A DNA stretch of 64,000 bases from Zootoca vivipara (GCF_963506605.1 NC_083277.1:56854001-56918000), one strand, 5' to 3'; shown: positions 44,760-63,659, numbered from the stretch's first letter. Notes: generated from the letters alone by a model not told the origin. Numbers and translations are program-made.

Positions 44760-47700
44760 TCACCACCTGACCTGGGCCTCGAGCTGCTCCTCCGGGCGAT
44801 AGGCCTTCCACATGCACACTGTACCATCCAGAGAGACCGACACATACTGCAGGGAAGCAGAGAGGACAACACGTCAGGGTGCAACACCATCAGCATCCTG
44901 TATGGGGCTGGATTCAGTCTCTCCATGCAGTGCATCGGTCACCCATGGTCCTCATCCATTTAGGTCTTCAGACTGCATTGGTCTCCCATCCAACTGCATG
45001 GCAGACTACAGTGGGCGGCACCAGCCTGGCATCCACTATCAGTGCAAGCCAAGCTAGGATATCAGTACAGGATTTCCTCCTGCCACATTGCACCTTCCTG
45101 ATATGCATGTGGGTGTGTGGGTGTACTTCTCCACAACTGACAGATTTGCATTAAAGCAATCAGTAAAGAAGCTGCTTTTTTTTTTAAGAGTACGCTAAAA
45201 AAAAAGGTTAGTTGGCCAAAGACCCAAGTGGCATTTCGTCAGACACCCAGCATGATCCAAGGAACAATGCTATAGGCCACATATGTATTCTGCTTCTGGC
45301 ATGGCAAGTCTGTGCTCCAGAATCCTCAGCAATATCCTCAGGACTCTGAGAGGCACACTCATGGCTTAGGCCAGGCATCCCCAAACTTCGGCCCTCCAGA
45401 TGTTTTGGACTACAATTCCCATCTTCCCCGACCACTGGTCCCGTTAGCTAGGGATCATGGGAGTTGTAGGCCAAAACATCTGGAGGGCCGCAGTTTGGGG
45501 ATGCCTGGCTTAGGCAGTGAGCCAACTCACTGTGTGCACATCTGACTTCCCATGTTCAACTTAAGAACAGGGCCTGCTGGACCCAGACCAAAGGCCCATC
45601 TCACCTAGCATTCTGTTCTCACAGCTGTCAAGCAGATGCCTGTGGGAAATCCACAAGTAGGATCTGAGTATTTCCCATGTGAACAGAGAATACACTACAG
45701 AATCCTTGTAGCAATTTCTAAGGCATACTGTATTCTTAGCTTGTAGAGGCCGCCCTTGCCTGCCCCACAAAGGATGGCTATTGCTGGCCTAGATACAAGC
45801 TAGAGGGGGGCAGCCATGTTTGCTCCCTCAGTAGGATTCAGCTTATTGTCAGCCACTGTTAGTGAAGCTAGCCAGAAATAGAAAACAGATAATTATTTGT
45901 TCAGTCCACCCCGTGACTGGGCTATGATAGGTAAACATCTTATACAGTAAACTGCTTTGAATTCTAAAATAAAAAAAGGATACAATTCCCCTTCTCCATT
46001 AAGTACTAGTTTGTTTGTAGGAAGACTGGAAGTGCAATATAATACCCTATTTAAACAACAAGAATACAGCATGGGGACAACCTTTTTGGTAGTGCTGCCC
46101 AGCTCAAAAGTGGGCATGACCTCACTTAATGTCATCAACATGTGGCTGGCTCTCTGAATAGGATGCTGATAGATACAGATTAGGCACAGTACCACATGGC
46201 TCCAATATGCATCATCACAGTACTGTATAAGCATTGCTTTGTGCTGGTACATTAATGACTTAGACCTAAGAGTGGGAAAACTCCCATCCCTGGCTATCTG
46301 GAACTTTTCCCCTAGTGGGTGGTCCTTGTCTCTCCTACCTGCTCCATTTCTGGGACATGGATGAGTCCCTTGACGGAATCTTGGTGCCCTGTGTAACTTT
46401 GCACCTGCACTCCAGAATTTGGATCATAAACCCTGCAGGGAGAAAAGGGCAGAGCCATCAGCCTGTTCAAAGATGTGCTGCCTCTCATCCCCTTCCTTTC
46501 CACCGCCAGCCTCCTTATGCAGGGGCTACCTGATGGTATCATGGACCCCTGCAAGAATGCAGCCATTGACCTGGTCGATGCAGAGGCAAGTGATCCCTCT
46601 GGAGGCTCTCAGGTTCTGCACACAGCATCCACCATCTTCGCTCTGTGTGAACCATTCAAAAGAAAAATCCTATCATCCCTGCTGCTGGAGGAAGACTCTC
46701 TGGTCATTCCCCAGAAAATGTTTCTGCCTGATCCGTATAACTCCCCCAAAAACTTATTGGTCCAGAAATTCAACCAAGTTCTTCAGCAACTAGCCCAAAG
46801 TTTTCCTGCCTCCCTGCTAGTGAATATACCCAACGTATGAAAGTAACCACCTGATCAAGCGCTTACCCAGAGCCGAATGGAGCCATCTTCAGCACCGCTA
46901 ACCCACTTGTCCTCTAGTGGGTGCCAGACCAAGGCTACGACAGCGGCTTTGTGCCCACAGAGCTCAGCCAGGAGCACCAGATCAGCACAGTGAGGATTGA
47001 AAGCGCAGATAAAAACTCTGCCAGTGCTAGAAGAGAAAGCAAATTCCCTCCTGCCCAGTCCAGGAGGGTGTGGACTGTGGGTGCGGGGATGGCAAAAGAC
47101 ATGGCAAAATCAAATTAGTGGCCCTGGACCCAAAGATTAGGTTCCTGCAGGAGTGGCTTCATCCTTTTTATTACTGGGACCCCCACTTTTCAGCAATACA
47201 TCTCTCCTGCTTGGGAGGCCTCAAAGTGCTGTTTGAGAACATTCTGTGGCTCCCCCACCTTTCAAATAAGCAGGCAGGCAGAATCACCCACCTCTTTGGG
47301 GAATAGGCCATATCCAGGATGGGCCCGTTGTCCTCAGGTAGACTGGAAAAGGCATTTTGCAAAGAGCGGTTGTGCAGGTCCCAAAGACACAGCTTTCCAT
47401 CCCATCCCCCACTGAGCTACAATGAAATACAGCAAGGTGAAGTCCTGTTTTGCAATGCTGCCCCTCCCTTACCCCTCCTTGCAGTGTGTGTGTTCTCTCT
47501 CTCTCTCTCTGGCACTGTCACTCATCCACATCCCCTTTCCTCCCAATATGTGCCATGCAGGCTCTTCCTACAGCATCTTACTCTCTTCCACTCTCTCCCT
47601 GCTGCCCATCAACAGAGACTGGGCTGTCTCATACAATGCCACCCAAGTCCATTCTACGGTTCACTCACCAGGTAGGGGAAATACAGTCCAGCTTCGCCGG

Positions 47701-50700: not shown

Positions 50701-53700
50701 GTAGATGAAGGGAGAGATGTAGCTCTTCTCCCACTTCTGTAGCATCCCACTGCTGTCCCCACTGAAGAGCAAAACGGGCTCCTTTTTGGCTGGTGGAGAT
50801 ACATTCAGAAGGTCAAGCAGGGGCAGCAGGGGCTTTGGAAAACCAGACAACATTTTTATTGCTGGACACATAAAACTCAACCCCGGCCCTTGTCCCAGCC
50901 AGATAAGACTCTCCTAGCTTTGAACCTCACCTCACGGAGCTTGTACATCTGGGGCTGGAGCGGTTGCAGAGTTAGAGATATATATGGCTGCTTACCATAA
51001 GTTAGGCACTCTAGGGGGTGTTTGCAAGGCAGCACTGTCAGGCATCCCAACTCGCTGTAGCGCCAGACGAGTATTTGCTGCGGCTTTGCCGTGCCTGGAA
51101 GAAGGAAAAGTTCTGCGTTTCTTAAAATTACTTGGGTTATTCTAAAAAGCTCTTGCCATCCACTGAGCCTTCTAATATCTCTGAAGAAGCTGAGTGGGAA
51201 ATCGCCTTGTGTTAAATTAGAAAAGCATGCATAGATCTCACAACACCTGATTGCATGAAACTGGAATCTCTGGATATAAATCTGGGACCTGTGGTGGGAA
51301 CCAACAGGAATATAAAAAGAGCCTGCTGGATCAGGCAAAAAACTTCCCACAACAATTAACCAGATGCCCATGGGAACATATAAGAGAGAAGTCTGTCCCA
51401 AGTGCTATAACCACGCTGGGTCTGAATGCAATAAGCACATGAGCCTACCAAGGTCACCACCTGGTTCTGTGATGAAAGCCCTTTCTTTTGTACTAATTAA
51501 TCAATTTTTACTACATTTATATCATGCCTTTCCTCCAAGGAGTTCAGGGCAAAAGACATAGTTTACTCACCCCATGTTTTCCTCACAACAATCCAGTGGC
51601 ATTAAGCTAAACTGGGAGAGGGTGATTGGCCAAGGAGGCCCAGCAAGCTTTGTGGCTGAGTGGTGGAATGAACCTGGATATCTCCAATGCCAATTCAACG
51701 CTCTCACCACTGGGTGCCATACTGGTCTAGTATCTTCCCCTAAAGCTATTTTCTCCTAACTGCATGAAAGGACATGGCCTACAGATAAGAAGAGATGCTG
51801 AATCTAACATTGGCAGCTGAGAGACCAGGTGAGGCCTTGTATTGCAGATGTTGGGAGGGGGGCATCTGTACTCTACTGGAGAACTCACCTATCACATGCC
51901 TCGAGTCTGGCAGGCTGAGAAGCTGCTGAAGAGCAGGCCCATCTTTCTGTTGGCCTTGGAATGTGGATATGAACTGTGAAACCTGAAAGCAGATCAGCAC
52001 AAAGAATTCAGAACAGGCTGGCCATTAAATACCTGTTTCTCCTTATTCTTCCTATAAATGTGGAATGGTACACAGGAGCCATCTTTACTTAGGGGTCAAA
52101 GACCTATCAAAAAGAGCTGTGCTGGGGGCACTTGTTCAGTGGACTTTTGAACTTTGTTGAGCACATGACAGAACTTGGGGTCGAACTGTGAAATGCAGTT
52201 GGATCTGGTATTGAAAGCTACAAAGAAATGTAATCTTTGAGTATGTTTTTGGGGGAGTTTGCAGATCCAGGAATACAGTGTTAGAGGCACTAATGGCTTT
52301 TGAAGCATCCACCCAATGGAAATAGCAATTGAAAAACATGTTCAGGAAGAGGCCCTGAGAATGGGAGGATACAACAGCTAAGGAAATGAGAAGAGACAGG
52401 ATTTAATCTTCAGTATATCTGCCATCTGACATTTGGAAGAGGATCAGAGTAATTTGTCAGTATAAAACGGCTGTGTATAGTTTTTATGTCACCTGTATTA
52501 TGTCATTAATCAGGCAAAATGGGTCTGATCTGTCAGGGTAAGGCAGCTTGTTAAAAGAAACATGCTCCATCAAAGAGTGCTCTTTTTGACATGGGTAATT
52601 TTTCATAGGATAAAAACTAATCAATATGAGGAGCTGAGGCCAACTAAGGACAGGCAATTCTTCAAGGGAAAATCATCCCATAGAACAGCTCCCATAGGAA
52701 CAGGGGAACTTACGTATGTTGTTCCAGGTCAGTCTATTTATCTATCCAGCCCAGTATTTAATACTCTGAGTGGCAGCAGCTCCTTCGGGTCTCAGGAATT
52801 GATTGCTCCCATTATCTAGCTCATTTTAAGTGGAGATGCTAGGGACTGAACCAGGGGCCTTTTTTTGACATGCAAAGCTTACTATTGTACCCTCCCCTCA
52901 CAAGGCACTGGTCTCCAAGCATCTTTTGCTGTGAGTTGAGGATGGCACACTTGAATATGTCCCATGCAATTTTCACTCCTGCAGTCTGAAGTAGCAGCCC
53001 ATGAAAAGCCGCACCACAAAATTCTGCTTCATGTGTAACATGGGTGAGCAACAGGATCCTGGGCTTATCGGTCCCCATTTGCACAGCATGGTCAAACCCT
53101 TGGCAGCAATTGTTTACCACTAGGACTGTGGCCTTGCTGGAAGAAAACAAAAAAACTGGACAATCTAGCTTATATAGTCTTAATGCACATGCCTAATATA
53201 CTAAGACTGTGAGCAAGTGTGGGAGTTGATTGGCGCAGCCTGGCAGTGCATGTGGAGAGAGTCATCTGGCTTATCCTCTTGGCTGCAATTCACAAAGACA
53301 GAAAGGGAAAGAAAACACACCCTGGCCTTTTGTCCTCCCTATATATCCCTATGCTAGTTCAGGCGGATGCAATGGCAACCCATCACCAATAGAGGGCTCC
53401 TTATAATAACAAGTTCATTGATCTTTAGGCGAGGGGAAAAAGGAAATGCCACACTTAAGTCGCTCACTATTTCCCCAGACTGAGGCTCATAGAGGGTGGG
53501 CTGGGTTGTACCACTGGTGATCCAGACGATGCCAACAGATGCCACGTAGCAGAGTCCAGTAATGTTCCCGGTGAAGGGGCCAAGGCGCTGGATGAGCTTC
53601 CCATCCTGGGACCAGATGCCAACTGTCTGGTCAAAAGAACCTGACAGCACCCTGCAGAGGAGATGACAGACCAGAGGGAGGCTCAGGGAAGCAGGACTTT

Positions 53701-56700
53701 GGCAGCGGAGTGGAGGAGCAGGGCTGTGCTTGCATTCCCCAAGCAAAGACTTCACACCCTCTATATAAACCAAAGGCTCCCTTTCTAGTCAATCATTGAA
53801 AGCAGGATAAAATATTCCATCTCTCTCCCCCCCCCTTTTCTTTAAGCAAAGTGTTCTTATTTTACACTTCCCCAAGCGGAACACACTCAAAGCCTCTCCC
53901 TCCTGGCCAGAGGTTCGAGTAACATCCTGCGGCTTCCAGTTCCTCTTTGTGGTAAACGTCATCCTTCCAGAGCCCTCTGGCTCTAGATGTGCTACTTAGA
54001 GCACCAGCCTCTGCAACAGAAATCTATCCAGAGAAGGAGGCATCTCCTCCTGCTTCTCCTTTCCCCATCACCATGCTAACTTCTCCTGGAAGGAAGGAAG
54101 GAAGCTGCAAAGGGAGGGGGAGAGAAAGGAGGAGGGAGCAAAGCCCATATAGTATTCTTTTATTTTAAAAAATGGATAGGAAATATAACCTAGGAAACGT
54201 GAATCAGAGGGGACGGAAGCAGGAATTAAGGACTGTAAGGGAATGGAATTTCTGCAGAGTACATTATAAAAGGTGGTAGGTGTACACTCAGCGTACAGTG
54301 ATTCTCGCTTTCTATATGTGAAAGCGAATTTAGCTCATCCTTGCCCTTCAATTGTATGCTTCCATCCACACCACAGCAGATCTCTTTGGGCAGCAGGATT
54401 TGCCCTTTTGAAGTGACTAAAGAGGGAATCCTGCTTTGTCTCGTTTCCCTGTCCTTATGCCAGAATGAGGAACCGTTTTCAGCCCGAGTGACAGGCCACA
54501 TTCCCTTCCTGGGGCCTCAATGGGCAGAGTCATTGGTATGACTCCTACCTTTCCTACAGTAAAAGCCAGAGGTTTCTACACATGCCCACAGCATGCCCAC
54601 ATCCAGGCAAACAAGAGGCATTATCACAGCTCAACAGCATATTCTTGCCATGCAAAAGCACTTGAGGGGGATGCAGAGCAGGGTCAGTGAAGGGCACAGC
54701 TTGTGGATGGAGGTGGGTGGCCTGGGACAAGTCCCAGGAGTCATTCAGAGAGGCCTGGAGGTCCACCTCTGGCCCTGGTTCTGAGGTTTCCCACCCCTGT
54801 TCTACATAAGAATTGTGGCACCAGGAAGCTGCCATGCAGGTACAACCTAAGACTATCTGTGAGGGACAAGGGATACAGGGAAGTCCCTCCCATCTTAAGT
54901 TCCAGCCCATCCCCAAGCGCTGGAGAGAGTAAGGAGAGCTCTGCCTCCAGCGGAGAGTCAGGAAGTGGTGTCCGAGGCTCAGGCAAGGTTGTGGAGCCCA
55001 TGCCTCAGGTGGGACAGGAAGTTGGACGCACGGGGGGGAGGCCAATCCCCCCAACTCCCGAATTGCGACGCAAACGTAGGGGGAAGAGGTTGGGTCTGCC
55101 AAAGCTTTGGTGCTGGAAGAAAACGCGCCAATCGCCATTCGGAGGTTCTGACACCTCACCTTAAGGATGCATTTTTACTGCTCTGAACACTGTAAATAAT
55201 CAGCACTTAATAAAAGCCTTAAAAGACCATGCTGGAGTCGTTACTCTAGAGTAGCCATATCAGGCCCTCTGACAGCAACCTCCGAATCTTTTTTTGGCTA
55301 CTTTGGAGTGCAGCGATGAGCGCTCAAGAGGCTGAGCAGTGGAGGCTGGAGGCCGAAGCAGCGAAGCAGGAGCTACGGAACCTCACAGCACAGGCACAGC
55401 AGCAATTGCATGCCGCTCAGGAGGAAGCGCGAGGGGCGCAGGAGGAGCTGAACAAGCTGGTGGACCAGGTGAGGACAAAAGAGGAGACTGAGAAACAGCT
55501 AAGGGTGATGGTATTGGACCTGCAGAAAAAGTTGGAAGAGGAGAAAGCCGCTAGAGGTGGGGGGGCGCCCCAGCCGCAGCTAGTCCAAGTGAGAAGGGGA
55601 CAGAGCCTAGTCACCAAGTTTAGCGGCGACCCTAGGGAATACCTAGGATTCGAGACAGAAATAAATTATGCGCTGGAATTGCATGCAGCAGAATTCCCAG
55701 ATGACGCGCACAGAGTCTCCTTTATCATAGAGCATTTGACGGGGGCCGCCCGGGAATGGGTAAGACCGCTCATCGCGCAAAAAAATCCTTGCATGAAGAA
55801 CGCAAAATTATTTCTAGAAGCTTTAAAAATAATGTACGCTAGTGACAGTGAAATGGAGGCCACTAAACAGGAGCTTCATAACTTAACACAAGGAAAATCG
55901 ACAGTGAGGGACTACTGGGCGAGATTCACCATGCTGGTGCACAAACTGGGGTGGGATCTGCAAAGTGAGCCAGTGAAATCAGCCTTCTACCTGGGTTTGC
56001 ATGCAGATGTTAAGGATGAGCTGGCAAGAGGTCCTAGACCGCGGACTATGGATGAGTTAAGCAAAGCGGCGCTAGCGGTGGGGGTGAGACAGGAATCCAG
56101 ATGGTATGACAAACAAGCGACGCGCGCAGCAAAACCTTGGTTCCCACGCTCCCAGGACAGACCACATCACCAAACCCCACCCCAGGGACCACCCCCAGAC
56201 CCGCCCAGACCAAGCCCAGAGCCAGAACCGATGGAGATCGGTGGAGCGCGCGCGCGGGCTTTTCAAACCCCGGCGGCGCCAAGACGCAAGGAGGGAAGGG
56301 GCGGGAATTGCTTTCTCTGCAACTCCCCCCGGCATCGCGTCAGAGACTGCCCTCATCGCAGAGAGTGGCAAGGAAAGGCGGGAACGGTTGTACCTTCCCC
56401 CACTGAAGCAGCACCACAGCAGGGAAACGAGACAGCCTGGCTGCAGGAGACAAGGGGCAGCAGCCAGGCACAGTCAGCAGACAACAGCCCCAGCCCGCCC
56501 ACCCGCACAGAGAGGAGCAGAGCCAGCCCACCCCTCCCAGAGCAGGAGTGGTTCTAGAAGTCACGCTAACGCTCCCAAATGGCTATCCCCTGACTGTCCT
56601 CGCCTTAATTGACAGTGGTGCCTCAGCCAACTTCTTCTCGAGAAACTTTGCAGAAGAGCACCAGATCCAGCTTCTGCAGCTGGATTTTCCCCTGCACGTA

Positions 56701-59700
56701 GCCACCATTGACGGCAGAGAGTTGCTGGGAGGGGCCATCACTCATCAACCCCCCCCCCCATGAGAATGACGGTGGGAAGGCACTCAGAGACACTGGCTTT
56801 CAACGTCACAACCATCTCAGACCCCCCCATCGTTTTGGGAATGAGCTGGCTGGCGCGCCACGACCCCTCCATAAGTTGGCACCAGAGATGCATCACGTTT
56901 GGGTCGGACTTTTGTCTGGAACATTGCATGCAGCACCAACCAGGGGAGGGGCCTCCAATAGCCACGGTGGCCACCATGCATGTCAAAGGGGGTGAGGCGA
57001 TACCCAAGCAGTACTGGGACCTGCAGGAGGTCTTCAGCGAAGCGGAGTCCGACCACCTACCCCCACACAGGTCTTTCGACTGCCAGATCAACCTGGTACC
57101 AGGGGCAACGATACCCCCAGCCAAGCTGTACGCCATGTCAGATCAGGAACTCGAGGATTTGCGTGCGTTCATAGACAAGAACCTCAAACGGGGGTTCATC
57201 AGAGAAAGCAAGGCAGCAGGAGGCAGCCCGGTCTTCTGGGTGGACAAGAAAGACACGCAACAGCGCCGTCTTGTGGTGGATTTCAGACGGCTCAACTCAG
57301 TGACAGAGCCAGTGGCTTTCCCCATGCCCAGAGTGGACGATCTCCTGACAGCGGCACGCAGGGGCAAGATTTTCACCAAGCTAGACCTGAGGGGGGCGTA
57401 CAACTTGATCAGGATCCGGGAAGGCGATGAGTGGAAAACCACGATGTTCACGCCTCTGGGCTCTTTTGAATATCTGGTGATGCCCTTCGGGTTGCAAGGG
57501 GGCTCAGCATGCTTCCAGGCCTTCATGCACCACGTCCTGGGGTCCCTTCTCTTCAAGAACTGCCTGGTCTTCCTGGATGACATCCTTATCTATTCCGCTG
57601 ACCCAGTGCAACATGTGAAGGATGTCAGGGAGGTGTTGCAACGCCTGAAGGAGAACCACCTGTATGTGAAGCTGGAGAAGTGCAAGTTCCACCCCAGGGA
57701 AGTGGACTTCCTGGGCTACAAGCTGTCAGACAAGGGGCTGGCGATGGACAAGGACAAGGTGCAGGCCATCCTGGACTGGCACAGCCCCAGGACGCGCAAA
57801 GATGCCCAACGCCTCCTAGGATTCGCCAACTTCTACAGGAAATTCATCAAGAACTTCTCGCGGGTTACGGCTCCCATCACGGATTGCCTGAGAGGCAAGC
57901 AGAAGTTCAGGTGGACGCCAGAGGCGCAAGCAGCGTTCGAAAGCCTCAAAAGGGTGTTCGCGTCCGACCAGAACCTGTTCCACGTAGTGCAGGATGCGCC
58001 CCTACGCATTGAGACCGATGCTTCGGACCGGGCTTTGGGAGCGATCCTGTTGCAACTGGACGCCAACAGAGAGTGGAGACCTTGTGCCTTCTTCTCCAGG
58101 AAGCTGACACAGCCTGAACGCAACTACACGGTGTTTGATAGGGAACTTCTTGCGATCCACGCTGCTTTCCAGCACTGGCGACACTTCCTGGTGGGCGCCA
58201 AGCACCCCATCCAGGTGTGCACAGACCACAAGAACCTGGAGTTCTGGAGAACGGCCAGGGTGCTCAACCAGCGACAGATACGGTGGGCAGAGTTCTTCTC
58301 GAACTTCAACTTCTCCATCCACTACATCCCGGGGGAGCAGAATGTCAGGGCGGATGCCCTCTCCCGCAAACCAGAGTACATGGAGCAGGAGTTGCCACCA
58401 GCGCCCAGGCACATTTTCCCCCCATCAGCATGGTCCTGCGGAGCAGCAGTGGTGAGCGAGGCAGAACTCACCGCACTGACGGCAGCAGATGAGTTTGCCT
58501 CCCGCATCTTCAGAGAGCTGCGAGGGGGGAGGGAGCAGGCTAAAGACTTTGAGGAAAGGAGGGGTTTGCTTTTTTACAGGGGAGCCCTGTACCTGCCCAC
58601 CAAACAGCTGAGAGGTAAGGTCCTCAAGCAGATGCACGACAACCCAATGGCGGGTCATTTCGGAAGGGACAAAACCACTCACCTAGTTATGAGACACTTC
58701 TGGTGGCCAGGGGTGCGGGAGGATGTGAGGGATTATGTAAGGGGCTGTGACACCTGCCAGCGAGCAAAGGTGGTCAGAGCGCCACCAGCAGGTTTGCTGG
58801 AGCCCTTAGCCACACCGCACAGGCCGTGGGAAGTAGTGTCCATGGACTTCATCACAGACCTGCCGTCGTCCAGGGGCAAGACCGCAGTGTTGGTGGTGGT
58901 GGACCTCATGTCCAAAATGTGCCACTTTATACCGTGTGCCAGGGCGGTCTCGGCAGAAGAGACGGCCAAACTGTTTGTTGACCACGTATTCAGACTGCAT
59001 GGATTGCCTTTAAGAGTTATTTCGGATCGTGGCCGCCAATTTGTTTCCAGGTTCTGGCGGCAGCTAATGAACCTCCTGCAGGTGGAGGTCAGTTTGTCTA
59101 CGGCTCGGCACCCGCAGACCAATGGACAGGCGGAGCGGGTCAACGCCATTCTGCAGCAGTACCTGAGATGTTACGTCAGCCAGAGGCAAACGGACTGGGT
59201 GGATCGCCTGCCACTGGCAGAATTTGCCTACAACAATGCGGTGCACGTCTCCACAGGGGTGTCGCCCTTTAAGGCCAACTACGGGCGCGACCTCAGATCT
59301 TTCCCGGAGAGGGAGGGGGAGGAGGAGGAAGAGGGCCCACAGGCAGAGGATTGGGCAGAGGACCTGGAGACGGTGCACCAGCAGCTCAGAGAACACTTGG
59401 AGAGGGCCAAGGAAGCGTACAAGAAGGGGGCAGATCGCCACAGGCGACCGGGAGAGGTCATCAGGGTGGGGGACAAGGTTTGGTTATCCTCGGAAGGTCT
59501 TCCCACCAGGGGGCGATGCAAGAAGTTAGCACCCAGGAGGCTGGGCCCCTTCACGGTCACGCAACAGGTCAACCCGGTAGCCTTCAGGCTAGCACTGCCT
59601 GAGGACATGAGAGTGCACCCAGTGTTTCATAGATCACTGCTGTCGCCGTACAGAGAAAGTACTAGGTTCAGGGACAGCGATCAGCCTCCAGAGGGAGGGG

Positions 59701-62700
59701 GGGAGACGGGAAACGCCCGTCAGCTCAATGAGGCAACTGAGATTTTAGACTCAAGGAGAGGGGTGAGAGGGCTGGAGTACCTGATAGCATGGGAGGACAC
59801 TCCGCCGTCCCACAATGAGTGGATACCAGCCACGGAAGTACCTGAGGAATTTTTAGTAGAAGAGTTCCACGCCCTGTTCCCCCACAGGCCCAAGCCCTGG
59901 CACATGGAAAGGGAGGAAGAGGGGGAGGGGCAGGAGGAAGGGATCGCAGGCAGCAGCTCTCCATGGAGATGGGAAGCGGAATTTGAGGATACGGAAGAAG
60001 AGGTGTGGGTTTCACCGAGGTCGACGACGTCAGAGGCAGGAGAGGACTGGCAGAACATTTTTACTCCCACCAGCTCTGACGCCACTGACTTCTTGGGATT
60101 CCCGTCTTCTCAGGGGGAGGGGGAAAGATCGCCGGATTGGGGGAAAAATTTTACACCCACAGGCTCGGATGCCACAGACTTCTTGGGGTTTCACTCGTCC
60201 CCAGCAAGCAGAGAGCCCCTAGGGAGGGGGGGGGAGGAGCCTGGGAGGGGGGTGGATGTGAGGGACAAGGGATACAGGGAAGTCCCTCCCATCTTAAGTT
60301 CCAGCCCATCCCCAAGCGCTGGAGAGAGTAAGGAGAGCTCTGCCTCCAGCGGAGAGTCAGGAAGTGGTGTCCGAGGCTCAGGCAAGGTTGTGGAGCCCAT
60401 GCCTCAGGTGGGACAGGAAGTTGGACGCACGGGGGGGAGGCCAATCCCCCCAACTCCCGAATTGCGACGCAAACGTAGGGGGAAGAGGTTGGGTCTGCCA
60501 AAGCTTTGGTGCTGGAAGAAAACGCGCCAATCGCCATTCAGAGGTTCTGACACCTCACCTTAAGGATGCATTTTTACTGCTCTGAACACTGTAAATAATC
60601 AGCACTTAATAAAAGCCTTAAAAGACCATGCTGGAGTCGTTACTCTAGAGTAGCCATATCAGGCCCTCTGACACTATCCTTCAGCATAAAAGTCTCCCCT
60701 CAATCCACTGCTGCTAGTATCTATTTGGCTACTCTTGCCTAGTACCTTCCTGTTTGGGGGGAAGGAGAGTCAATTAGACACTGACAGGTCATGGCACGTA
60801 GCAGGAGAGCACCTCTTGACAAATGTCTTCACACACAACCCATTCTCTAGATCCCACGGCCTAGGTGGCCTGCCCTTTGCACTGAGCTCGTACCTTGTGG
60901 TTTCTTGCTGCCGTACCAGCAGCAGGTGAGTGATGGCTGCACGATGGGCACGTGGGATGCAGTGCTTGGTTGTCAGGCCCTTCTTGCCTGGAGTTTGATA
61001 GGTGTCAAAGATCAGCAGCTTCTTGTCATACCTGGGAAGGGAAGGGAACGTTGAATCTACTGAATCTGGACTCTGAGGCTGACGTGGCTTAAACCTCCCC
61101 GTGGTGGGAGAGGGAGCTTTGGTTTCAAAGCAGAGCCGCAGATCCCCTCCTTGGGAAAATGTGTATGACTCACTGCTTTGTCCTTCGCAGTCATCCAGAA
61201 ACCACATTATTACTGTCACCTTGTTGGAGACCATCTCACTGCCTTCCACCAGGGCCTGTTTGATAAGGTTCTGCATGACACGATGAGTAGCATATGATAG
61301 AAGCATTTCACAAAGCAGTAAGTATCACAGAGGGTCTGTACTTTGAACCCATCTGCAGACGGAGCCCATTCTTCATTCCCGCAACTCCCAACTTACCCTG
61401 CTGTGTATATTTGGTTGTCCAGGCAGGCGATGCAGGACACAATGTCTGTGTGTGTGTGCTCGGAAAAGCCCCGGGCCATGTGGACCACGTGGCCAGATTC
61501 TCTCCTTTCATCCAAAGGGAAAGCCATCAGGCGTCCCTTGCTGCCACAAAGCAGAAGATGCCGAGCCAGGCTGATGGACAAGGTGAAGATAGGGTACCCT
61601 AGCTGGAGGGGGGGAAAGCGGGGACTGGCTTGAGTGCAGGAAGACTGTGCACAAAATAATAGGCTCTAAGGCAGGCATCCCCAAACTTCGGCCCTCCAGA
61701 TGTTTTGGACTACAATTCCTATCTTCCCTGACCACTGGTCCTGTTAGCTAGGGATCATGGGAGTTGTAGGCCAAAACATCTGGAGGGCCTGCTCTAGGGA
61801 CTCAGGGAGGCAATACTACCTAGTTCTCGCCCTGCAAGACTTTCTGGAAGGGCCTGGTCTTACATAGATTTTATTGGAGTTAGACCATCAGGGCACTCGA
61901 GGCCCAGAAGACAGCAAAATCTAATCCTGATTTCAGTGCTTTTTAAAAAGAAATAAAAGGTGCCGGTACTCACCATGAAGTTGTTACAGTGTCACACTTT
62001 TAACATTTGGTGTTTGGCGGCGGGGGTGGTGGTGGTGGTGGTGTTGGTGTTGGCACAGAAAACCCTTGATTACCCCCCAGAATAAAGCATTGCCTATTTT
62101 TCAGAATGAACATTACACTTCAAGGGCTCAAATATTTTATTTCTTACATTTCTCTACGGCCCTTCATCCGAAGATGGTTTACAAAATAAAAACACAAAAA
62201 TGTACAGCATACTAACAAAAACAATACCCCACCCCCAGTTGAGAAGGCCATAGATTGTTTAGTTAGTCAAATAATATTTAGGAAGCTGTCTTCTACCTCA
62301 GGGACAGGAACCTGCAGCTCTCCATATGCTGTTGGACTACAACCCCCATTATCCCTGAGGCTTGGCTGGGGCTGATGGGAGTTCTGGAAGGCCACAGCTT
62401 AGGCACTCCGGGTCTGCATTGACTGGGAGCAGCTTTCCAGGGTGTCAGACAGATGTCCTTTCCAGCGCTACCTGGAGAAGCCGGGAATTGAGCCTGGGGC
62501 TTCCTGTATGCAATGCATGTGCTCTGCTCCTGAGTTGCAGCCTTTCGTGGGAATACTGGTTGGGGCAAGTTCTCCTTTATCCTCAGAAGCCTCAGTTAGT
62601 AGGTGCAGAAAGTGAGATCTCTACCTAAACTGCAGATGTAGCATCCCAGGAATCCCCAGAATTCCTTGAGCAATAAGAGCTTAGCACAATCACTCTCTGA

Positions 62701-63659
62701 CAGGGTTTCCCAGACTTGGGTCTCCAGCTGTTTTTGGACTACAATTCCCATCATCCCTAGCTAGCAGGACCAGTGTTCAGGGGTGATGGGAATTGCAGTC
62801 CAAAAACAGCTGGAGACTCAAGTTTGGTAAACCCTGTTCTATGATATCTGGTCAATTCCATGCAATGACTTACAAACTTCAGAAAAGCAACTGTGTCATT
62901 ACTCTTGGCCTGCCCTGACCCCAGGATGTAATACGGTGTGGTTCTTACCAGGATGCGGTCAAGCACAGTGCCACCTACAGCCCACACGAGCACGGAGCCA
63001 TCATTGGAAGAAGAGAAGAGGAGTCGTGCCTGCGCCCAGGACTGGAAGTGGGTGACTCGGCCAGCATGCTCCTTGGCGCAGAGGGACATGTGCCCATTCT
63101 CCGCGTCCCACCATTTGATCACTCCATCTATCAGGGCAAGAAGGGTAACAATATATGGCTTGTTTAGCTAGGGGCTCATTTTGGGAGGAACGTCTCCAGC
63201 TCATTTGGAGAGAGATGCCTTAAGGAAAAACCTGATGGGTTTTGAATGAGGGCACTGTGCTAGCATGGCATTCCCTGATGAGAACTCAAGCATAAATTCA
63301 GAGGTCATATAGGGACATGGGGACATGTGCTGAAAGCATGTAGATGAGACAGAAAGCAGACTCTTGGTGCAGGTGAAAGATATACTGCGTTTTGGGCTGT
63401 ACTCTTGTTGTGGGGATGGAAATGGGGGTCTATTATGTGATGTAACTGTCCAAGATTTGGGCATGTTATACGAAGCAGGCATGGAAGTTGGGTAGAATTT
63501 AATGCTGTAATGCTCACAAAGAACTGGGAAAATGTACCTCTCTAGCTAGGACTCACCTTCAAAGCCGGTGAGGCACTCCCGTCGGGCTGAATGGTAGCCA
63601 AGAGCTGTTATGGGACGGCGATGACGTTCTTTCACCTTCAGATGCTCTTGCATAGCCAT
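44760..63659 (-). CDS. Uncharacterised WD40-repeat protein (~749 aa, probable double beta-propeller)
   Basis: Phase-compatible exons 63659-63557, 63127-62949, 61602-61397, 61031-60894, 53651-53468, 51982-51889, 51094-50996, 50789-50699, 49926-49720, 49390-49282, 47905-47669 (internal structure uncertain), 47416-47292, 47050-46867, 46642-46530, 46432-46339, 44846-44760 (2250 nt). Many WD signatures: GFEDGVIKWWD, SSSNDGSVLVW, SGSFDQTVGIW, LCGH...LSGGWDGKLCLWD, LCGH...VSGAEDGSIRLW, YTGH...VSVSLDGTVCMW. An acceptor precedes the ATG, so upstream exons may lie outside the window. Confidence 0.85.
45372..45507. mobile_element. Palindromic hAT MITE, young
   Basis: CAGGCATCCCCAAACT...AGTTTGGGGATGCCTG TIRs; perfect 8-bp TSD GCTTAGGC. 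Confidence 0.9.
54858..55274 (+). repeat. 5' LTR
   Basis: TGTGAGGG...CCCTCTGACA; AATAAA at 55209-55214; identical to the 3' LTR except G55141 vs A60540. Confidence 0.97.
55277..55287 (+). promoter_or_regulatory. Self-priming primer-binding site
   Basis: AACCTCCGAAT, 2 nt after the 5' LTR, is the exact reverse complement of ATTCGGAGGTT at 55137-55147; there is no TGG tRNA-type PBS. Confidence 0.8.
55316..56557 (+). CDS. gag: Retrotransposon Gag (413 aa)
   Basis: N-terminal coiled coil, capsid-like region (KFSGDP...FIIEHLTGAAREW...LTQGKSTVRDYWARF), EPMEIG motif, zinc knuckle CFLCNSPRHRVRDC (CX2CX4HX4C). Confidence 0.93.
   Translation: MSAQEAEQWRLEAEAAKQELRNLTAQAQQQLHAAQEEARGAQEELNKLVDQVRTKEETEKQLRVMVLDLQKKLEEEKAARGGGAPQPQLVQVRRGQSLVTKFSGDPREYLGFETEINYALELHAAEFPDDAHRVSFIIEHLTGAAREWVRPLIAQKNPCMKNAKLFLEALKIMYASDSEMEATKQELHNLTQGKSTVRDYWARFTMLVHKLGWDLQSEPVKSAFYLGLHADVKDELARGPRPRTMDELSKAALAVGVRQESRWYDKQATRAAKPWFPRSQDRPHHQTPPQGPPPDPPRPSPEPEPMEIGGARARAFQTPAAPRRKEGRGGNCFLCNSPRHRVRDCPHRREWQGKAGTVVPSPTEAAPQQGNETAWLQETRGSSQAQSADNSPSPPTRTERSRASPPLPEQEWF
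56422..56491 (+). promoter_or_regulatory. Programmed -1 ribosomal frameshift signal
   Basis: G_GGA_AAC in the gag frame (56422-56428), 6-nt spacer, 10-bp stem GCCTGGCTGC/GCAGCCAGGC; the -1 frame stays open into the protease. Confidence 0.85.
56422..56763 (+). CDS. pol: Pol N-terminal part: aspartic protease (-1 frame), cut off at a C11 run
   Basis: VLALIDSGASANF active-site motif; the frame ends at TGA 56761-56763, just after the homopolymer at 56749-56759. Confidence 0.85.
   Translation, partial: GKRDSLAAGDKGQQPGTVSRQQPQPAHPHREEQSQPTPPRAGVVLEVTLTLPNGYPLTVLALIDSGASANFFSRNFAEEHQIQLLQLDFPLHVATIDGRELLGGAITHQPPPP
56760..60563 (+). CDS. pol: Pol: end of protease, reverse transcriptase, RNase H, integrase, chromodomain and long C-terminal tail (1267 aa open frame)
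   Basis: RT: KLDLRGAYNLIRI, MPFGL, FLDD. RNase H: ETDAS, RELLAI, TDHKNL, ADALSR. Integrase: HHCC, SMDFI / SDRG / QAERVN, GPF. Chromodomain: ILDSR...EYLIAW. Confidence 0.96.
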   Translation: MRMTVGRHSETLAFNVTTISDPPIVLGMSWLARHDPSISWHQRCITFGSDFCLEHCMQHQPGEGPPIATVATMHVKGGEAIPKQYWDLQEVFSEAESDHLPPHRSFDCQINLVPGATIPPAKLYAMSDQELEDLRAFIDKNLKRGFIRESKAAGGSPVFWVDKKDTQQRRLVVDFRRLNSVTEPVAFPMPRVDDLLTAARRGKIFTKLDLRGAYNLIRIREGDEWKTTMFTPLGSFEYLVMPFGLQGGSACFQAFMHHVLGSLLFKNCLVFLDDILIYSADPVQHVKDVREVLQRLKENHLYVKLEKCKFHPREVDFLGYKLSDKGLAMDKDKVQAILDWHSPRTRKDAQRLLGFANFYRKFIKNFSRVTAPITDCLRGKQKFRWTPEAQAAFESLKRVFASDQNLFHVVQDAPLRIETDASDRALGAILLQLDANREWRPCAFFSRKLTQPERNYTVFDRELLAIHAAFQHWRHFLVGAKHPIQVCTDHKNLEFWRTARVLNQRQIRWAEFFSNFNFSIHYIPGEQNVRADALSRKPEYMEQELPPAPRHIFPPSAWSCGAAVVSEAELTALTAADEFASRIFRELRGGREQAKDFEERRGLLFYRGALYLPTKQLRGKVLKQMHDNPMAGHFGRDKTTHLVMRHFWWPGVREDVRDYVRGCDTCQRAKVVRAPPAGLLEPLATPHRPWEVVSMDFITDLPSSRGKTAVLVVVDLMSKMCHFIPCARAVSAEETAKLFVDHVFRLHGLPLRVISDRGRQFVSRFWRQLMNLLQVEVSLSTARHPQTNGQAERVNAILQQYLRCYVSQRQTDWVDRLPLAEFAYNNAVHVSTGVSPFKANYGRDLRSFPEREGEEEEEGPQAEDWAEDLETVHQQLREHLERAKEAYKKGADRHRRPGEVIRVGDKVWLSSEGLPTRGRCKKLAPRRLGPFTVTQQVNPVAFRLALPEDMRVHPVFHRSLLSPYRESTRFRDSDQPPEGGGETGNARQLNEATEILDSRRGVRGLEYLIAWEDTPPSHNEWIPATEVPEEFLVEEFHALFPHRPKPWHMEREEEGEGQEEGIAGSSSPWRWEAEFEDTEEEVWVSPRSTTSEAGEDWQNIFTPTSSDATDFLGFPSSQGEGERSPDWGKNFTPTGSDATDFLGFHSSPASREPLGRGGEEPGRGVDVRDKGYREVPPILSSSPSPSAGESKESSASSGESGSGVRGSGKVVEPMPQVGQEVGRTGGRPIPPTPELRRKRRGKRLGLPKLWCWKKTRQSPFRGSDTSP
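60257..60673 (+). repeat. 3' LTR
   Basis: 417-bp copy of the 5' LTR; AATAAA at 60608-60613; followed by TSD CTATC. Confidence 0.97.
61672..61791. mobile_element. hAT MITE with a deletion in the right TIR
   Basis: Near-identical to the 45372 copy; flanks CTCTAAGG/CTCTAGGG. Confidence 0.8.
62701..62836. mobile_element. Palindromic hAT MITE
   Basis: CAGGGTTTCCCAGACTTGGG...CAAGTTTGGTAAACCCTG; same subfamily as 6021-6157. Confidence 0.8.

Follow-up and report, generated by a model that had tools for sequence, protein, structure and literature searches.

Host proteins dock onto readers of active chromatin through TND-interacting motifs (TIMs), which a review defines as a short helix whose F/V/L/I side chains fill a first pocket, a flexible acidic linker of 8-16 residues that is rich in G/S/T and phosphorylated by CK2, and an optional FxGF that fills a second pocket (PMC9987994). 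FxGF is optional for most TNDs but is present in all known partners of LEDGF and HRP2 and is essential for their binding, and several partners carry two or three motifs in series (PMC9987994). Such IBD-binding motifs are found in KMT2A/MLL1, JPO2, POGZ, IWS1, ASK/DBF4 and MED1. The consensus has been given as D/E-x-E-x-F-x-G-F, and MLL1 uses F129 and F133 on a helix plus F148-L-G-F151 (PMC8022399). Drosophila JIL-1 binds the LEDGF domain of JASPer through D-F-x-G-F, in the context D-F-x-G-F-D-E (bioRxiv 10.1101/624023). Lentiviral integrase is tethered to the same H3K36me reader, LEDGF/p75, and integration is thereby directed into transcribed gene bodies (PMC9987994, PMC8022399). How LTR retrotransposons of vertebrates choose their insertion sites is largely unknown; known tethers come from yeasts, lentiviruses and gammaretroviruses. 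Here, we describe a young lizard gypsy element whose integrase tail carries two copies of a conserved peptide built like the host motifs, so that it may steer its insertions as HIV does, but by mimicry of host ligands.

A young gypsy element with a duplicated peptide in its Pol tail

The window, a 64,000-nucleotide stretch of Zootoca vivipara DNA (GCF_963506605.1 NC_083277.1:56854001-56918000), contains a Ty3/gypsy chromovirus at 54858-60673 on the + strand. Its two LTRs (54858-55274 and 60257-60673) are identical at 416 of 417 positions (99.76% by blastn), begin with TG and end with CA, and are flanked by a 5-bp target-site duplication, CTATC, at 54853-54857 and 60674-60678. The insertion is therefore very recent. 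A gag open reading frame (ORF) at 55316-56557 (413 amino acids) matches the Pfam families Retrotrans_gag and Ty3_capsid. The Pol ORF, taken from its first ATG (56760-60563), matches reverse transcriptase, RNase H, integrase zinc finger, integrase core, a Tf2-type SH3 domain and, C-terminal to these, a chromodomain (amino acids 992-1037; E 6.6e-6; 26.4 bits against a cutoff of 25.1). In this copy the protease part (DSG at 56611-56625) lies in another frame, the break falling in a run of C near 56.75 kb where copies differ in length. The Pol ORF runs through a polypurine tract at about 60222-60256, translated as a Gly/Glu-rich stretch, and directly into the 3′ LTR, whose first 307 nt encode the last 102 residues of Pol. 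The peptide G-G-x-V-D-V-R occurs at this same polypurine tract/LTR junction in relatives. The LTR-encoded portion includes a basic, nuclear localization signal (NLS)-like patch followed by L-W-C-W-K-K (60459-60530), conserved as LLCWKR at the Pol C terminus of four related proteins (labeled P0002, P0009, P0036 and P0056 in our set).

After the chromodomain, the tail is acidic, with 27 D/E against 8 K/R in 120 residues, and S/T/G/P-rich. It contains two 22-codon units, at 60045-60110 and 60135-60200, with FLGF at 60090-60101 and 60180-60191. Each reads D-W-x3-F-T-P-T-x-S-D-A-T-D-F-L-G-F-x-S-S, the last two variable positions being S and P in unit 1. The 14-codon cores differ by 7 synonymous changes and 1 nonsynonymous change (Nei-Gojobori pS of 0.70, which is saturated, and pN of 0.031), and eight random substitutions would leave at most one residue changed with a probability of 1.4e-4. 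Over the whole unit, 12 of 17 differences fall at third codon positions. The original prediction's observation of tandem acidic FLGF motifs, and of a peptide rather than a DNA sequence being conserved, is thus confirmed, with one correction: it described a 90-nt duplication, and while the period is 90 nt, only 66 nt of each unit align, the 24-nt spacers being unrelated. DNA identity is about 74%, and Tandem Repeats Finder reported nothing, the duplication being too diverged at the DNA level. Together, these data fit an old duplication in which both copies are held by selection on the peptide in this reading frame. A further, degenerate unit upstream (59964-60014) retains W-x3-F and the acidic linker, but its F-x-G-F is replaced by other residues; we infer from the tail comparison that it aligns with the main motif of the Podarcis group A/P0056 lineage.

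WD40-like coding pieces lie on the minus strand on both sides of the element, at 46858-47109 (WD40, E 3.4e-7) and 62760-63167 (beta-propeller families, E 1.8e-6). The element is antisense to these pieces and therefore probably lies in an intron; the claim that it does so is consistent with this arrangement, although it is not proven. This single insertion says nothing about targeting, because survival in introns is also what selection leaves behind. Reads and contigs show that the family is highly repeated in the source organism. A contig under a second organism label spans both units with 5 differences, one contig skips 59915-60156, and a related subfamily diverges at 59928. The two best-supported variant letters within the units fall at a spacer residue and at an x position of W-x3-F, but as most variants were not listed, this is weak evidence. 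RNA reads cover related subfamilies but barely cover this tail at 88% likeness or more, which neither shows nor excludes expression of this subfamily.

Conservation of the motif and its association with a degenerate chromodomain

The original prediction had specified that it would fail if FLGF were not conserved in related elements, and the motif passed this test. Searches with the integrase-chromodomain-tail region and with a Pol profile returned many gypsy Pol proteins, the nearest of which are from the wall lizard Podarcis muralis (groups A and B), together with two fragments, P0036 (from ENA) and P0056 (from Logan). All of these carry the same arrangement in the tail, and every member of this well-supported lacertid gypsy clade with a known tail has it. 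Eight instances from five lineages have exactly W-x3-F-x9-F-x-G-F, including two in this element, one in P0036 (ending T-D-F-L-G-F), two in P0056 (D-F-V-G-F and S-F-R-G-F) and that of Podarcis group A (S-F-R-G-F). Podarcis group B is one residue shorter (W-x-F-T-P-T-...-F-Q-G-F). Across relatives the final motif is FRGF, FQGF, FVGF, FLGF or FEGF. Pol identity among these lineages is only 54-63%, and outside these roughly 20 residues the tails cannot be aligned. A conserved island in unalignable flanks is the usual signature of a functional linear motif.

A composite pattern (hydrophobic-x3-hydrophobic, an 8- to 9-residue linker with at least 5 D/E/S/T/G, then F-x-G-F) occurred only in squamate gypsy tails among 293 proteins and 332,772 residues, and was absent from about 270 other relatives. 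In a tree of the integrase region, built with a quick search and so only moderately reliable, the motif bearers form one clade of 16 rows (SH-aLRT 100) inside a squamate clade of 23 rows (99). An Anolis carolinensis lineage (P0265 and P0275), which has no chromodomain by Pfam, carries L-x3-F-x8-F-E-G-F. It groups elsewhere in the tree, on a long branch, so a second origin is possible but not established. A homology search with the tail alone (amino acids 1040-1170) found nothing, in part because its length window excluded shorter fragments such as P0036 and P0056. A PDB sequence search with the tail gave 0 matches at E up to 10, and an ESM Atlas feature search gave no usable hit.

AlphaFold2 predicts the chromodomain-like fold (59733-59897) with a pLDDT of 94 to 97 and leaves the tail at about 50 from the end of the chromodomain onward, as expected of a disordered region. 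At the three aromatic-cage columns this element reads N, W, T, retaining one of the three aromatic positions, where P0013 and 94 other relatives read Y, W, Y. None of 94 relatives with a full cage has a tail F-x-G-F, while all 12 F-x-G-F bearers have at most 2 of the 3 cage positions aromatic, and 11 of the 12 have 1 or none. Because the bearers are one clade plus Anolis, this association reflects essentially one or two evolutionary events and not 12 independent ones. It is still what a replacement of the targeting device would look like.

Candidate partners of the integrase tail motif

In light of these data, we regard a selected function of the peptide as near certain. The best explanation, in which we have moderate confidence, is that the two units are short linear motifs mimicking the LEDGF/HRP2 subclass of host TIMs. 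In this view, the integrase multimer would present several such motifs after nuclear entry, the motifs would bind the TFIIS-N-terminal-type domain (IBD) of the H3K36me2/3 readers LEDGF/PSIP1 or HRP2/HDGFL2, and the intasome would be held on transcribed gene bodies. CK2 phosphorylation of the linker would strengthen binding, the conserved LTR-encoded basic patch may supply nuclear import, and the motif may have taken over the targeting role of a chromodomain that has lost its methyl-lysine cage. What the analysis itself establishes is that the motif exists, is duplicated, is under strong purifying selection, is conserved with fixed spacing across a clade, lies in a predicted disordered region and fits the motif definition with the deviations given below; the binding itself, the identity of the partner, phosphoregulation and the targeting outcome are inferences. 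The original prediction's interpretation, LEDGF-type tethering of the intasome to gene bodies through a host-like motif, is accordingly supported only in part, although the match to host motifs is better than it had proposed, since an upstream aromatic pair and a 9-residue linker are also conserved.

A possible but less likely alternative is that the peptide is a selected host-binding motif with a different partner. This could be another TND protein (IWS1, TFIIS, MED26, PPP1R10 or Elongin A) or an unrelated reader of acidic-aromatic peptides, such as a nuclear transport receptor or the TFIIH p62 PH domain, and the outcome would be nuclear import, coupling to the elongation complex or another form of targeting. 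Conservation and selection indicate only that the peptide matters and not what it binds, TIMs in general engage several TNDs (PMC9987994), and the conserved NLS-like patch shows that the tail has more than one functional island. However, the invariant F-x-G-F points to LEDGF and HRP2, given its role in their known partners, and no other motif class that we considered is known to need both W-x3-F and F-x-G-F at fixed spacing. Of the other classes, an LC3-interacting region (W-x-x-I) fits only unit 1 and is not conserved, the BET ET-binding motif needs a basic-hydrophobic pattern, and the spacing of a pS-x-x-F BRCT ligand is not conserved.

It is unlikely that the motif serves the element itself, as a protease processing site that trims the integrase tail, a contact for integrase multimerization or for Gag, or an intramolecular partner of the degenerate chromodomain. 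Retropepsin sites are hydrophobic or aromatic, and the motif co-occurs with a changed chromodomain. However, AlphaFold2 does not dock the tail on the chromodomain, the Anolis lineage has the motif without any chromodomain, and tandem copies, an acidic S/T-rich linker and a fixed 9-residue spacing are not expected of a cleavage site. A neutral low-complexity duplication with a chance FLGF match is very unlikely: although tails after the chromodomain are generally variable, and some copies differ here, this reading is contradicted by the 7:1 ratio of synonymous to nonsynonymous change, by conservation between unalignable flanks and by the absence of the pattern from other relatives.

A broader and more tentative reading is that squamate gypsy retrotransposons have evolved TIM mimics in the integrase tail possibly twice, once in the lacertid clade and once in the chromodomain-less Anolis lineage, and in doing so exchanged chromodomain-based heterochromatin targeting for tethering to H3K36me3 readers, a lentivirus-like gene-body strategy reached through linear-motif mimicry. 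Full-text searches, of an incomplete literature collection, found no paper describing such a motif in a retrotransposon integrase. If the motif binds LEDGF/HRP2, this would be the first retrotransposon found to copy the host's own TIM ligands, would show convergence with lentiviruses on the same chromatin reader through a different interface, and would give a natural case of a targeting device being swapped, from a degenerate chromodomain to a linear motif. It would also predict a measurable difference in insertion landscapes between two gypsy clades living in the same lizard genome.

Comparison with host motifs and other integrase tethers

Like the host motifs, the units described here sit in an acidic, predicted disordered region, occur in tandem, as host motifs often do, and have a hydrophobic pair spaced one helical turn apart, a D/E/S/T/G linker with CK2-type sites and then F-x-G-F. 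The upstream pair is W-x3-F in all lacertid lineages and L-x3-F in Anolis, paralleling F129/F133 of MLL1; a helical turn is called at Q-N-I of W-Q-N-I-F, but only in a low-confidence part of the model. The linker, at 9 residues, is at the short end of the published range, with 7 of 9 residues being D/E/S/T/G in both units here and 8 to 9 of 9 in the related proteins P0001, P0002, P0036 and P0056. In Podarcis group B it is 8 residues long, S/T-rich and nonacidic, the acidic and CK2-type sites lying after FxGF. The TxxD sites noted in the original prediction are present (TSSD and TGSD), and relatives have TSDD, SEDE and similar S/T-x-x-D/E sites. With respect to the consensus, both units read D-A-T-D-F-L-G-F, so that position −4 is acidic, as in 8 of 9 lineage instances, whereas position −2 is a phosphorylatable T and not E, and the match there would depend on phosphorylation. 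Position −2 is T/S/G/D in most instances; P0056 unit 1 matches E-x-E-x-F-x-G-F exactly, and group B has no acidic residues at these positions. The present motif also differs from the host motifs in being carried by a retrotransposon integrase, in its upstream anchor, W-x3-F, and in its fixed 9-residue linker.

Lentiviruses bind LEDGF/p75 through the folded catalytic-core dimer interface of integrase. That site overlaps the MLL1 IBM2 site on the IBD (PMC8022399). Here, the device would instead be a disordered linear motif that copies the host ligands. Linear targeting peptides are found in other integrase tails: the gammaretroviral tail recruits the BET ET domain, the Ty5 targeting domain recruits Sir4, in a phosphorylation-dependent manner, and Ty1 integrase recruits the Pol III subunit AC40 (see also PMC7459421). 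The lizard element would share with these a short C-terminal peptide that recruits a host chromatin or transcription protein, but the motif chemistry and the inferred partner differ, the ET-binding motif being basic-hydrophobic and not acidic-aromatic. Finally, the element belongs to the same backbone family as chromoviruses that target through their chromodomain, such as MAGGY, and the chromodomain fold is still predicted; however, two of three cage aromatics are lost in this clade, making methyl-lysine reading doubtful, and the tail motif is an addition not seen in the canonical chromoviruses examined.

Reading frames and LTR-encoded residues of Pol

Inspection of the Pol reading frame revealed that the protease part (frame of 56407-56757, with DSG at 56611-56625) and the RT-integrase part (frame of 56760) are in different frames in this copy. 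The break, at about 56745-56757, is in a run of C, and copies and RNA reads differ in length at 56750. At the other end of the protein, the last 102 residues of Pol are encoded by the U3 part of the 3' LTR (60257-60563). Within this stretch, at 60459-60530, a basic NLS-like patch followed by L-W-C-W-K-K is conserved as "LLCWKR" near the Pol C-terminus of four related gypsy Pol sequences (P0002, P0009, P0036, and P0056). The LTR start is therefore under protein-coding constraint as well.

Host gene context and gypsy integrase domains in a protein annotated as a receptor

WD40-repeat-like exon pieces of a host gene were found on both sides of the element, on the minus strand, at 46858-47109, 47174-47416, 53357-53788, and 62760-63167, and the element is antisense to them. 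In Podarcis muralis, an annotated "vomeronasal type-2 receptor 26-like" protein (P0011) carries integrase core and SH3 domains of this gypsy clade at its N terminus, which reflects either a chimeric gene model or an exonized insertion.

The chromodomain and tail in related lineages

The chromodomain (59733-59897) was predicted to fold with high confidence (pLDDT 94-97) but keeps only 1 of 3 aromatic-cage residues, and the same holds for the whole motif-bearing clade. A canonical-cage gypsy lineage without the motif (P0013) coexists in Podarcis. Directly after the chromodomain, at 59928, contigs of organism B and RNA reads of organism A diverge from this copy as loose ends with a shared consensus, indicating an expressed sister subfamily with a different tail. 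One contig also skips 59915-60156.

In the chromodomain-less lineage of Anolis carolinensis (P0265 and P0275), the FEGF motif lies after a "G-D-S-V-M" peptide. Because that peptide appears to mark the PPT/LTR junction in the canonical Anolis lineage (P0198), the motif may be LTR encoded in P0265 and P0275. At a similar place, P0198 has D-E-E-E-N-L-G-F.
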